Positions 50,715 through 55,554 of a DNA stretch of 64,000 bases are shown piece by piece. Under the pieces are notes generated by a model. It made no database searches, was not told the DNA's origin, and saw nothing but the letters and a program-made list of their open reading frames with translations. Source of the DNA: Dimorphilus gyrociliatus (taxonomy: Eukaryota; Animalia; Annelida); NCBI GenBank assembly GCA_904063045.1, contig CAJFCJ010000001.1, positions 1 through 64,000 on the forward strand, written 5' to 3'. How positions within the stretch are numbered: position 1 is the stretch's first letter; each line of letters opens with the position of its first letter. Position numbers and translations under genes: made by a program.

Positions 50715-53700
50715 ATGTTTCGCTTTGCAATTTTTGCTTTCCTCATAAGTTCGACAGGTAATGTAATTACTTTTAAATGCTTTCTATTCTTTACCTTTCT
50801 CTTAATTGATTTCCTTCTTTTTTTAATCGTGTCGCCTCTCCTAACCTTTCACTTAAAAAAAAACCAACACTCTTTTTTCTCTCTTTAAACTTTTTAGCCG
50901 GCTTTCTCGTTTTCCTCTTCTTTTTTAGTGATTGCATAAAGAGACAGCGATAGTTTGTTCGTGTTTTTACCGACTCTTTTTTGCAGGAGCGCAACAACTG
51001 TTTAACTGTAATTTTGAAAATGGAAACTTTTGCCCTCAAATTGACAATAGTCGAATTTATTGGTCCGTTGGCAGGTTTGGATCAGATGAGGGTAGATCTG
51101 GGACAGGACCTGTTTCAAATACAAGACCAGGTGGTCAAGGAGGTAAGAAAACTAAAATCTTTCAATAATTATATAGATATTTGCATTGGCGGTTTATTTA
51201 CTACAATAGGTAACTTCTACGCCTACACAACGTATCCAGGCTCAGGTACTAGTCTAGCTACGGCAACTTTGACTTTTAATATTAACAACAACCAGCCTGA
51301 GAACAACTTTTGTCTATCGTTTTACTTCAATACCTTTGGAAGGGATTTCGGAACTTTTCAAGTTATTGGCAACGATGGAGTTAATCAATTTACCATTTTT
51401 TCTAGAGATGGCCGTAAGTTTTTCTTTTTAGCTACTTTTCTCCTTTTAACCTTTTCAATTTCATCCCTTTTTCACATCCTCATTATCTGTGGATTTTAGA
51501 CCAAAATGGCTTCCGTGGTAATAGAGAATGGTATATCTTTAGAAATACCTGGAACAACAGGAACGTTAGAACGTTGAGATTTTCAGTTACGATGAGAGGT
51601 GCAGACAGTGAATTTGCTTTGGACGATGTTATGGTAACAAGAGGAAGATGCAGTTCTGAGTTGACATCTCAAGGAGCAACCGCTAACTACTATCCCGGAA
51701 CATCTTCACTCTGGCAATCTGGATTTAGTGCTCTCACATCGGCCACTTTCAATAGCCAAAATTACAACTTCGCTAACATTTGGCGTTGGACCAATCAAAG
51801 ATCCGACGTATATCAGTTGGGAACTGGTCCAAATAACGGAGGTTCTCCTTATAATCCAGGTTTTTATTAAGCTGAAATAGCATTAACCTTTCGCAATATA
51901 ACATAATTTTTCACTGATTGAAGGTTTGGGATACTACTTGGCCACCGACTTTAGAAGTTTTAGTGTTGATTCCATTGGAGCATTCCGTTCCCCTACATTA
52001 ATTCAATCCGGAGCCTCTTTTTTCAACTTTTTCTATTATATTTATGGACAGAATATCGGAAGAATGGAAATTTGGGCAATCTCAAATGGTGGAACAACTA
52101 GATCAACTGTTTGGTCTAGACAACGACATGGTAATTATTTCAAGCGACTTCACAGTCTATACTAATGCCTTTTATTTTAACAGTAAACAATTATATTGGT
52201 GAAAGAAGGTGGTATGATGCCTGCGTTAACATGCCTGCTGGAACTGAATACTTTGTTGTAGTTTCATGGAATGGTGGAATTTTCTCTGAAATTGCATTAG
52301 ATGCTTTGTCTTGGGGCACAGGCAGCTGCGGTGCTGCCACTGATAATTCTAACCCACCTCCTAGACCAAATACGCCAGTTCCGGTGCCTGTACCAGTTCC
52401 AGTACCTGTTCCAGTACCAGTTCCAGTTCCTGTACCTGTACCAGTACCAGTGCCAGTACCTGTACCCGTACCTGTGCCTGTGCCTGTACCTGTACCCGTA
52501 CCTGTTCCTGTACCTGTACCTGTACCTGTACCTGTTCCTGTTCCTGTTCCTGTTCCTGTACCTGTTCCTGTACCAGTACCAGTTCCAGTTCCAGTTCCAG
52601 TACCAGTGCCTGTACCTGTACCTGTACCTGTACCTGTACCTGTACCTGTGCCTGTACCTGTACCTGTACCTGTACCTGTACCTGTACCTGTACCTGTACC
52701 TGTGCCTGTACCCGTACCAGTACCAGTACCAGTTCCCGTACCCGTCCCTGTCCCATCTCCTGTTCCTACACCTTCACCTACTACAGGCGATTACGTTCTT
52801 TGCCTTAAGAAAGGTGCGAGATGCTTCCAAAAGGTCAAAACCGATGTATCCGGTTCGGGAATAATTGGAGCTACAGGACCAAGGGGTGTTGATGGTCTTC
52901 CAGGACCGGTTGGTGACCAGGGTCCACCAGGACGGCCTGGTCCAGCAGGAAATGAAGGCCCACCAGGTATTGCAGGCCTACCAGGTCCAGTTGGACCAGA
53001 AGGTCCACTTGGAGCTACAGGAATTAGAGGTCCGCCTGGCCCAGAGGGTCCCGTAGGTCCAAATGGCCGACCGGGAGAAACTGGCCCTCGTGGTCTGATT
53101 GGCGCAACTGGAGATAATGGACTACCAGGACCACAAGGTTTACGTGGCCCTGATGGTGTGAGAGGTCCTGTCGGACCTATTGGACCTCGAGGTTGGACTG
53201 GTGAGAGAGGACGCCAAGGAAATCAGGGACCACCTGGTGTCCAAGGCAGCACAGGTTTACCTGGTAATCAAGGTATACAAGGTATTGCTGGTAATCCAGG
53301 ACCAATTGGTTTACCCGGAGCAACCGGTTTAAGAGGACAGCAAGGTTTAGTTGGATTATCTGGTCAAGCGGGACCAGCGGGAGCAACTGGTTCTCCAGGT
53401 ATCCCGGGACCTCAGGGTATTCCAGGATTAGAGGGCGGCCAAGGCAGCACAGGATCAGATGGAGTTCCAGGAATTCAAGGAGCTCCAGGTTTACCAGGTT
53501 TGAGTGGACCAAGAGGAGCTCCAGGCGCTACTGGAGATGTTGGACCACTTGGACAGGTTGGTGGTCAAGGAGTGCAAGGTATTCCTGGACCAGCCGGTGC
53601 AATGGGAGCCTCAGGAGCACCTGGACCGAGAGGGCCAAGCGGTCCAGCTGGACCGCAAGGACCTCGTGGTTCGACAGGTTTAAGAGGTCAAGCTGGTCAA

Positions 53701-55554
53701 CCTGGATTATCCGGGCCACCAGGTAAAGAGGGTCCAGTTGGTGCTCAAGGGCCTCGAGGTCCTCAAGGTTTGCCTGGCCAAACTGGTCCTCGAGGGGATA
53801 TTGGTCTGCCTGGCCCCCAAGGAAGCACTGGTGAACAAGGACGTTCTGGAGGTCCAGGTGCTACTGGTGCAAGAGGTCTGCCAGGACTTCAAGGTAGAGG
53901 AAAATGTTGTTGAGTTGTGAGAACATGGATTTAAAATGTTTTTTCCCAAAATATATAGGTCTTCAGGGTGTCCAAGGGTTACCAGGATTAAGAGGAGAGA
54001 CTGGACCACGCGGAGGCAGAGGACCAACCGGCCCTCAAGGACAAGTTGGCGCTAGAGGTCCCCAAGGTTCGAGGGGAAGCGTTGGTTCAACTGGCGCAAG
54101 AGGACCAAGAGGTTTACAAGGTAACGCCGGTCCTCAAGGAGCAACAGGACTTGCTGGAGTACCAGGGCAGGACGGCTCTGAAGGTCCCCGCGGTAGACAG
54201 GGACTTCCAGGCATTAGAGGAGGTGCAGGTCCGGCAGGGGCTAAAGGTGATATAGGCCCGCCAGGTGTACAAGGTCCACCAGGTATACAAGGAAATATCG
54301 GCCCACAAGGTTTCACCGGATTGATCGGTCCACAAGGATTGCAAGGACCTGTTGGTAAGAATTTTGATAATGAAGTATCATCTTTCCAAAAAAGATAAGA
54401 GATACAAGCGGCTAATTGAACATTTATATCTAAAAATAAAATTACCTTTGTCTAGGTCCTCGTGGTCCAGAAGGTAACACTGGACAGCCGGGTCCTATTG
54501 GTCAGCAAGGAGGAGCCGGCCCTCCAGGAGATAGGGGAGCACCAGGTCCACGGGGTGACAATGGTTCACCCGGTGGAATTTTCCCAGTTATTAACGAGTG
54601 TTTAAGAAGCAACGGAGGTTGCCAACAGATATGTATGGATACGTACGACGGTTATTGCTGTATGTGCGAAGCTGGATATAAATTGGTTCCACTACCTATA
54701 AATTGCGCCGTAGAGAATTTGAGTTGTTTCGAAACTCCTCAAACAGGTTACAGATGTCAATGTAGATTAAGCAACGGCCAAGTGCTACCACTTGACGGTA
54801 CCTCTTGCGAAGGTAAGATACACACCGGCAGCGATAATAAATTATCAATGAATTCAGCAAATTCAACTTCAACTGCAGAAATTTAGTTTATTTATTTGTT
54901 TGTTTTCAAAAACAGATATTGATGAATGTTCCGTGAGAAATGGAGGTTGTATGCACTCTTGTAGAAACACCGTAGGAAGCTATTTATGCCAATGCGAAAA
55001 CGGATATAGATTAGCTCCAAATGGACATACTTGCGTTGGTAAGAATTTTCCAACCACCAATATAGATTCTTTGCGACTGAGAATTAATCGTATTGTTCCT
55101 CTCTGATTGTGTCTAATACTCAACTTTTCTGTCCCTCATAATAGATATCAACGAATGCAATAGTCAAATATGTGGTTCTTTGACGTGCGTTAACACTCCA
55201 GGCAGCTATTCCTGTACTAGAAGAGCCGCGGGTGCAGCAGCACAAGGAGCAGCTGCAGACCCGACTGGAGAATCTTCTTCCTCATTTGGCTCTGGCACTA
55301 TAGTTCTAATTGCCGTATCAGCAGCAGTGGCTGCAGTCCTCATTAATATGGCGTCTATGCTAGGAGTAAAACGATTAATTAGGTGGAGAAAGAATAGATC
55401 GATGGGTCAGGCTGACGATACCGTCTCTCAAACTTCAGTCGAGACGAACAGATCGTCTGTAAGAAGTGAGGCATCATTTGATAGTAGAATGTTGAAAAAG
55501 GGGGTATTGCGCCACGATCAGCCGGATGTGCCTTCTGAAACTCAACCAATGTAA
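50715..55554 (+). CDS. Predicted type I transmembrane collagen: SP - MAM - MAM - (PV)63 - Gly-X-Y x172 - EGF/cbEGF - TM - cytoplasmic tail, 1321 aa, 10 exons
   Basis: Exons 50715-50757, 50987-51142, 51210-51413, 51500-51859, 51924-52130, 52184-53893, 53959-54354, 54456-54812, 54916-55038, 55145-55554; all are phase 1 GT-AG junctions, 3966 nt in total. Signal peptide [18 protein letters not shown] motifs [28 protein letters not shown] and [17 protein letters not shown]. Collagen 52858-54571. cb[40 protein letters not shown] followed by KRLIRWRK. Confidence 0.9.
52375..52752 (+). repeat. Coding hexanucleotide repeat CCN-GTN x63 encoding (Pro-Val)63
   Basis: 378 nt in frame within the collagen gene; third codon positions vary (CCA/CCT/CCC/CCG, GTT/GTA/GTG/GTC). 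Confidence 0.95.

Follow-up and report, generated by a model that had tools for sequence, protein, structure and literature searches.

Membrane-anchored, presumably trimeric rods are known from the MACITs (XIII, XXIII and XXV), collagen XVII, MARCO, SR-A, ectodysplasin and gliomedin. All of these are type II proteins, as published for the vertebrate membrane collagens (PMC4678570); they combine an N-terminal cytosolic domain and a signal anchor with interrupted helices and with N-to-C folding that starts at a membrane-proximal coiled coil. Here we describe a gene of the annelid Dimorphilus gyrociliatus, located at 50715–55554 (forward strand) of the window, i.e. the 64 000 nt stretch of DNA analysed (assembly GCA_904063045.1, contig CAJFCJ010000001.1, positions 1 to 64 000). 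Its product is predicted to form a membrane-anchored rod as well, but one with an N-terminal signal peptide, a C-terminal transmembrane (TM) helix and an uninterrupted triple helix. The N-terminus is a short signal peptide and not a cytosolic domain with a signal-anchor TM helix, and the helix is a single run of 173 Gly-X-Y triplets and not a set of COL1-3 domains with NC domains between them; the contrast to the type II vertebrate proteins, drawn in the initial annotation of this DNA, holds (PMC4678570). The parts of the protein follow in the order signal peptide, two MAM domains, (Pro-Val)63 tract, two-cysteine knot, 173 Gly-X-Y triplets, four EGF-like modules, TM helix and 62-aa tail, and we regard this structural description as highly probable. 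We characterize the gene as encoding a putative type I (N-out, C-anchored) membrane collagen, a member of a wider cassette family that would have gained the MAM-MAM and Pro-Val head in this lineage, with the protein working as a stalk or tether; to this reading, mechanism included, we assign a probability of roughly 0.5.

Type I proteins with membrane-distal MAM domains, as seen here, include meprin alpha/beta, RPTP-mu/kappa, neuropilin, MAMDC4 and zonadhesin, and in meprin and zonadhesin an EGF module stands next to the TM helix, again as in the present protein. These proteins, however, have no collagen helix and carry astacin, Ig/FN3/PTP, CUB, LDLa or VWD domains, whereas catalytic, Ig, FN3 or CUB domains of the meprin, RPTP-mu or neuropilin type were not detected by Pfam in any exon of the gene. 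The streptococcal proteins Scl1 and Scl2 form a ‘lollipop’, in which a trimeric collagen-like stalk bears a globular head at the N-terminus and is fixed to the cell surface by the C-terminus. They offer a functional analogy only, being bacterial, non-homologous, anchored to the wall by LPXTG and devoid of EGF and MAM domains. A known secreted protein with cbEGF modules and collagen repeats differs as well: there the EGF modules precede short collagen segments, and both TM helix and MAM domain are lacking. Shell collagens ‘with EGF domain’ of the brachiopod Lingula carry EGF, EGF_CA and FXa_inhibition domains (PMC4595640; PMC13425148). Like these lophotrochozoan proteins, the product of the window gene has a long helix together with EGF/EGF_CA/FXa_inhibition modules and no COLFI domain; the available part of the first paper mentions no MAM head, Pro-Val spacer or TM anchor, and the likeness drawn here is one of domain content (PMC4595640).

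The gene is a single split gene of 10 exons, 50715–50757, 50987–51142, 51210–51413, 51500–51859, 51924–52130, 52184–53893, 53959–54354, 54456–54812, 54916–55038 and 55145–55554, all on the forward strand; the coding sequence of 3966 nt (stop codon included) specifies 1321 aa. All nine introns have GT-AG borders and all are in phase 1, which is typical of shuffled extracellular modules. Their sizes, 53–229 nt with a median of 86, fit the short introns of the species, whose published median is 66 bp (PMC7854359). The window has a G+C content of ∼36% and its genes are compactly spaced; no tandem paralog of the gene was found within it.

We aligned contigs from four public RNA runs, one of which (X1) carries the label ‘coral metagenome’, to 50600–55700. 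Spliced contigs displayed GT..AG joints for eight of the nine introns, each exactly at the modelled junction. The ninth intron (54813–54915) is implied by letters 467–590 of the second X1 record, which correspond in length to exon 9; alignment rows near 54879–54908 were dropped as repeat. That record (2597 nt) spans 52783–55606, so that the collagen is connected, through every EGF exon and the TM exon, to the 3′-untranslated region (UTR) in one transcript. Another RNA record (1333 nt) connects exons 2 to 6, and RNA contigs cover 50600–50770. The exons therefore belong to one expressed gene with the TM exon included, as had been presumed in the initial annotation. The X1 transcript is a variant differing from the window by ∼1–2% (51574–55479): the 37 listed differences divide into 18 synonymous changes and 19 replacements and spare every helix glycine, and an in-frame GCA (Ala) is inserted behind 55233, in the Ala-rich juxtamembrane linker. 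Two contigs from run X4 have loose ends, at 53509 and 54350, where they extend into collagen-coding sequence absent from the window. We considered alternative splicing for these ends and set it aside; they are probably assembly chimeras with transcripts of paralogous collagens.

The signal peptide (aa 1–15; exon 1 and the first 2 nt of exon 2, 50715–50988, forward strand), recognized by reading the sequence, has a basic R3, the core FAIFAFLI and small residues at -3/-1, with the predicted cut after S-T-G; the cleavable appearance noticed earlier is borne out. Two divergent MAM domains had also been proposed. As each of them is split over three exons, Pfam MAM matches to single exons are weak (26.3 bits for exon 5, 12.2 bits for exon 3). 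We therefore derived a MAM hidden Markov model (HMM) of our own from two library proteins, using 13 of their domains that Pfam had verified as MAM, and ran it on the spliced protein. The score was 31.9 bits for MAM domain 1 (aa 22–185, four cysteines, 51007–51651, spanning introns 2 and 3) and 22.3 bits for MAM domain 2 (aa 228–372, without the N-terminal cysteine pair, 51778–52329, spanning introns 4 and 5), both on the forward strand. By this profile both domains of the spliced protein are members of the MAM family (PF00629), and the HMM scores the domains of the paralog described below likewise. In the orthologous gene of a related species, where the last two exons of MAM domain 2 are fused, that exon reaches 38.6 bits with Pfam MAM, above the gathering cut-off of 26.4. 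A sequence search of the PDB with exon 5 (MAM domain 2) produced no match.

Downstream of the MAM domains a Pro-rich linker (aa 373–525, 52330–52788, forward strand) encloses the Pro-Val tract (aa 388–513, 52375–52752, forward strand). Counting of hexamers gave 63 units, the number claimed before, in 10 hexamer variants whose differences are all synonymous. Since the units differ only synonymously and the tract is present in the ortholog, the length or stiffness of the tract appears to be selected. The two-cysteine knot (aa 526–541, with C530 and C537; 52789–52836, forward strand) lies just before the triple helix and may be an interchain staple; it shares 96% of its residues with the ortholog and 81% with the paralog.

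The collagen triple-helix domain (aa 549–1067, 52858–54580, forward strand) spans introns 6 and 7, both of which split glycine codons. The Gly-X-Y run is uninterrupted, as the initial annotation had it; the count of 172 triplets ending at 54571 had to be corrected to 173 triplets (519 residues) ending at 54580, while the other coordinates given there were right to within a few bases. Proline occupies 31% of X and 21% of Y positions, and threonine is frequent in Y. Exon 6 matches Pfam Collagen (PF01391) with E = 2e-53, and exons 7 and 8 match it too, which places the protein in the collagen superfamily by sequence. It is not a fibrillar collagen: Pfam reported no COLFI propeptide in any exon, and EGF modules come after the helix. 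From the sequence a helix of 519 × 0.286 = 148 nm and a Pro-Val spacer of up to 126 × 0.31 = 39 nm would be expected; the rod-length figures and the order of domains proposed earlier hold on recalculation. Two RGD sites in the helix were tried as motifs and discarded, as they do not seem conserved (by eye) in the translation of the ortholog.

The helix is followed by four EGF-like modules (aa 1071–1209, 54590–55215, forward strand); the presence of EGF modules had been noted before, and they give strong Pfam matches to FXa_inhibition, EGF_CA and cEGF. EGF1 is of the LDL-receptor EGF-A-like type, with a resemblance to the LDL-receptor EGF in PDB at E = 9e-10, EGF2 has four cysteines, the third module is a cbEGF and the fourth a truncated cbEGF. 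The EGF1-EGF2 unit (54590–54808) contains 11 cysteines including a CC doublet, all kept in a distant relative (L010, 1019–1300). With this odd number one cysteine should be unpaired within the chain and thus could be free for an interchain bond. The TM helix (aa 1236–1259, 55294–55365, forward strand), located by hydropathy at almost the positions claimed earlier (∼55300–55368), is followed by a basic stop-transfer. Its mean Kyte-Doolittle value over 19 residues is 2.4, and strongly hydrophobic 19-residue windows occur in the protein only at aa 1231–1260. Given the cleavable-looking N-terminal signal and the single C-terminal TM helix with basic stop-transfer, the predicted type I topology holds. 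The cytoplasmic tail (55366–55551, forward strand) has 62 aa, 13 of them Ser/Thr, in agreement with the Ser/Thr-rich tail of ∼62 aa announced before. It ends in a conserved block, SVRS..SF(D/N)S.M.K.G.LR.D.P..P(S/T)ETQP(M/I)-COOH, which is also kept in the paralog. The C-terminal TQPM was considered as a PDZ ligand and discarded as not canonical.

To what extent is this architecture conserved? A search with exon 4 among 1.84 billion representative proteins found only two exon-sized Logan fragments and generic multi-MAM proteins (P0003 and P0006 in this 1.8-billion-protein library). The contigs bearing the exon-sized fragments are genomic, since introns are present. They represent two relatives, the ortholog and the paralog. 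The N-terminal half of the ortholog is on contigs L001-L005 and its C-terminal half on L009; the contigs of the ortholog end and restart in a PV/PA repeat. The helix aligns gap-free with that of D. gyrociliatus, therefore the ortholog has the same 173 triplets. We observed dN/dS values of 0.02–0.17, with synonymous sites saturated and with the strongest constraint on the Cys knot, EGF modules, TM helix and tail. Identity is 90% for the EGF modules (dN/dS 0.02), 88% for the TM helix (dN/dS 0.02), 81% for the tail (dN/dS 0.06) and 80% for the signal peptide; the helix follows with 77% and the MAM domains with ∼70%. The juxtamembrane linker after EGF4 is variable, Ala/Ser-rich and 58% conserved. 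Intron 5 is missing from the ortholog (L001, 2646–3067).

The paralog is complete on a 5.1-kb contig (L006), where 12 exons separated exclusively by phase 1 introns encode 1108 aa. From the MAM domains through the tail its parts follow in the same order as in the window gene. It has ∼35 Pro-rich residues in place of the Pro-Val tract and ∼140 triplets with two breaks, and it shares the Cys knot, the EGF signature, the Asn of the TM helix and the tail block ending in ETQP(M/I); identity is 33–44%. The Asn (LINMA in the window gene) is conserved in the ortholog and in the paralog (LIN-M/I-A) even though TM identity to the paralog is only 33%. The paralog has an extra intron between MAM domain 2 and the linker (L006, 2226–2332) and two more inside the helix. 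Just downstream of it the contig end (5115–5143) resembles the 5′ half of a tRNA gene.

To search for more distant relatives we scanned metagenome contigs with an alignment (A1) of the EGF1-EGF2 unit. The matches were L010 and L011, with 56–57% G+C and a single open frame without introns, hence cDNA-like, and L012-L016, in which introns are present. L010 matches aa 732–1290 in one high-scoring segment pair at 42% identity and encodes collagen, four EGF-like modules with all 11 EGF1-2 cysteines, a TM helix and then the basic stop-transfer KRRRK; in L015 these modules are spread over separate exons, after which comes a TM exon with a predicted helix. The hallmark of this cassette is a helix ending in GG..P..NEC that runs directly into the EGF1 signature, followed by EGF2, cbEGF3 and EGF4, and the window gene displays it. 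No MAM domain was detected in the loci L010-L016, and several of these relatives have a much longer collagen of matrix type. Thus, judged from the sequences, the apparently C-anchored collagen-EGF-TM cassette is a wider family of its own, defined from L010-L016 and barely described.

The initial annotation had found no described family with the layout of this protein, and this statement survives in part. The collagen-EGF-TM end recurs in L010-L016; all parts of the protein are known modules, and its C-terminal cassette is common to other, hardly described genes. What appears to be undescribed is a collagen of this sort with a MAM-MAM-(PV)n head, found only in the window gene, its ortholog and its paralog. 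No annotated relative with this head was found in four protein searches, three of which excluded proteins of 1100–1300 aa. Length-limited word searches with the Cys-knot region, exon 10 and the C-terminal end of MAM domain 2 returned only the Logan fragments of the ortholog and an unrelated 952-aa collagen-like protein, and an ESM Atlas feature search with exon 6 only generic collagen clusters (0.79). Literature on type I proteins with MAM and collagen and on Pro-Val repeats yielded nothing relevant, nor is such a protein described in the Acropora skeletal-proteome and Nematostella matrisome papers.

The protein is most likely, as its predicted parts suggest, a trimeric, C-anchored cell-surface stalk of ∼150–190 nm; we infer in this way its trimerisation, folding direction, surface location, ligand and function. 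Three chains would associate at the membrane end through their TM helices, with the conserved Asn and small residues, and through the cysteine-rich EGF modules. In model peptides, Asn and small residues in TM helices drive helix association. Nucleation is most plausible at the membrane end because no coiled coil, COLFI or C4 domain is present. The helix of 173 triplets would then zip from C to N into the rod of ∼148 nm, and the two-cysteine knot would lock its N-terminal end. Three extended Pro-Val arms, each up to ∼39 nm long, would carry the MAM pair away from the cell, where the MAM heads could attach to one another or to components of the matrix or cuticle; in this way the apical extracellular matrix would be tied to the surface or spaced from it. 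The conserved tail would bind a cytoplasmic partner. That the protein acts specifically as a microvillar or cuticle tether we rate, from the sequence features, as possible but somewhat short of an even chance.

Several observations weigh against this stalk model. A recognised trimerisation domain (coiled coil, COLFI or C4) adjoining the helix was not found. The Asn of the TM helix is absent from L010 and so cannot be the family-wide nucleator. MAM domains have many different roles, and the choice of ligands is wide. No RNA contig bridges the Pro-Val tract (52375–52782), every assembly breaking there, and the repeat count is that of the genome assembly alone. A shed, purely extracellular fate of the protein would speak against the model too; we consider such a fate unlikely.

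In that case the protein would be the precursor of a secreted matrix or cuticle collagen, whose TM helix would serve as anchor only while the trimer assembles, until a protease sheds the ectodomain into the matrix. Among vertebrates, collagens XIII and XVII are precedents for shedding, and nematode cuticle collagens are precedents from the other end. The very long, matrix-type collagens among the metagenome relatives also fit with it, as do the Lingula collagens of the EGF type, which were recovered from shell matrix (PMC4595640). A dibasic TRR is located just after EGF4, before the variable juxtamembrane linker, and an ADAM-like gene lies 6 kb upstream, although this may be coincidence. Still, TRR does not fit the furin consensus, and the paralog has TRN in its place; we discarded it as a cleavage motif. 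Furthermore, few parts of the protein are as constrained as the TM helix and the tail, which is unexpected for a disposable anchor; conservation of the tail speaks for a protein that works permanently in the membrane, together with a cytoplasmic partner, and against a throw-away anchor.

Quite improbable, in our estimate, is a receptor for cell-cell adhesion or signalling, in which the MAM heads would bind each other as in RPTP-mu, the tail would signal and the collagen and Pro-Val parts would set the reach. MAM domains of type I receptors such as meprin and RPTP-mu do mediate homophilic binding or oligomerisation; also, the tail motif is conserved between the paralogs and the length of the rod is strictly conserved between the species. 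A reach of ∼190 nm, however, far exceeds the usual distance between cells, no catalytic or docking domain is recognisable in the tail (Pfam matched only the EGF part of exon 10), and the MAM domains, with their 70% identity, are the least constrained of the globular parts. An artefact, with two genes fused by mis-assembly at the Pro-Val repeat or a mis-spliced model, is hardly credible: the RNA gap and the breaks of the ortholog contigs at the repeat speak for it, but the unbridged interval lies inside a single open reading frame (ORF; 52165–53913, 582 aa) that holds the end of MAM domain 2, the tract, the knot and the start of the helix, the two half-contigs of the ortholog have a repeat of one kind where the first stops and the second starts, contig depth is similar on both sides of the tract, and a mis-join is excluded since a single contig, free of long repeats, carries the whole layout of the paralog with its parts in the order of the window gene.

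Upstream of the gene we observed two non-coding blocks that are conserved even though synonymous sites of the coding sequence are saturated in comparison with the ortholog. The first one (50521–50714, forward strand), in the 5′-UTR or promoter-proximal region, continues through exon 1 to 50760 and has 85% identity over 242 nt to L001/L002; the second (50214–50374, no strand assigned) has 89.6% identity over 163 nt to L001. An Rfam scan of both blocks gave no family match, and we regard them as candidate promoter, enhancer or 5′-UTR elements. Among the neighbours, ORFs of an ADAM-type metalloprotease are located at 42764–45083 on the reverse strand, with the zinc site HEIGHSMGSNHD, a Cys-rich region and a TM helix (by eye). 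Two long ORFs of 409 and 352 aa at 46378–49448 (forward strand) seem to belong to a single gene, whose product would be a secreted or type II protein. A nuclear receptor has exons at 60100–63467 (forward strand), with a C4 zinc-finger DNA-binding domain resembling the EcR/LXR-type NR1 (by eye) and a ligand-binding domain.

With regard to the stalk model, the retention of 173 triplets despite 23% divergence of the helix, together with the maintenance of the 63-unit Pro-Val tract at the protein level, argues for selection on molecular reach. The protein would thus be a natural ‘molecular ruler’, testable by electron microscopy; practical value is modest until cell type and ligand are known. A bolder extension, which we think rather unlikely, is that the gene belongs to a class not described so far, the type I, C-anchored trimeric collagen ‘stalk receptors’, and is the first of them to be recognised. 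Their folding would run from C to N, nucleated at the TM/EGF end, and MAM-MAM heads on rigid Pro-Val arms, held ∼190 nm out, would build or hold the annelid apical matrix while a cytoplasmic motif links it to the interior; the MAM-less cassette family would then represent the long-sought lophotrochozoan cuticle and shell collagen genes, assembled at the membrane. Textbook membrane collagens are type II throughout; that a conserved and expressed family has its anchor at the other end implies that its helix is nucleated at the membrane in a different manner, from the C-terminal side near the EGF modules and the TM helix. Such a family may also account for the way in which collagenous cuticle or shell matrix is fixed to the epidermal surface, or built there, in annelids and brachiopods.

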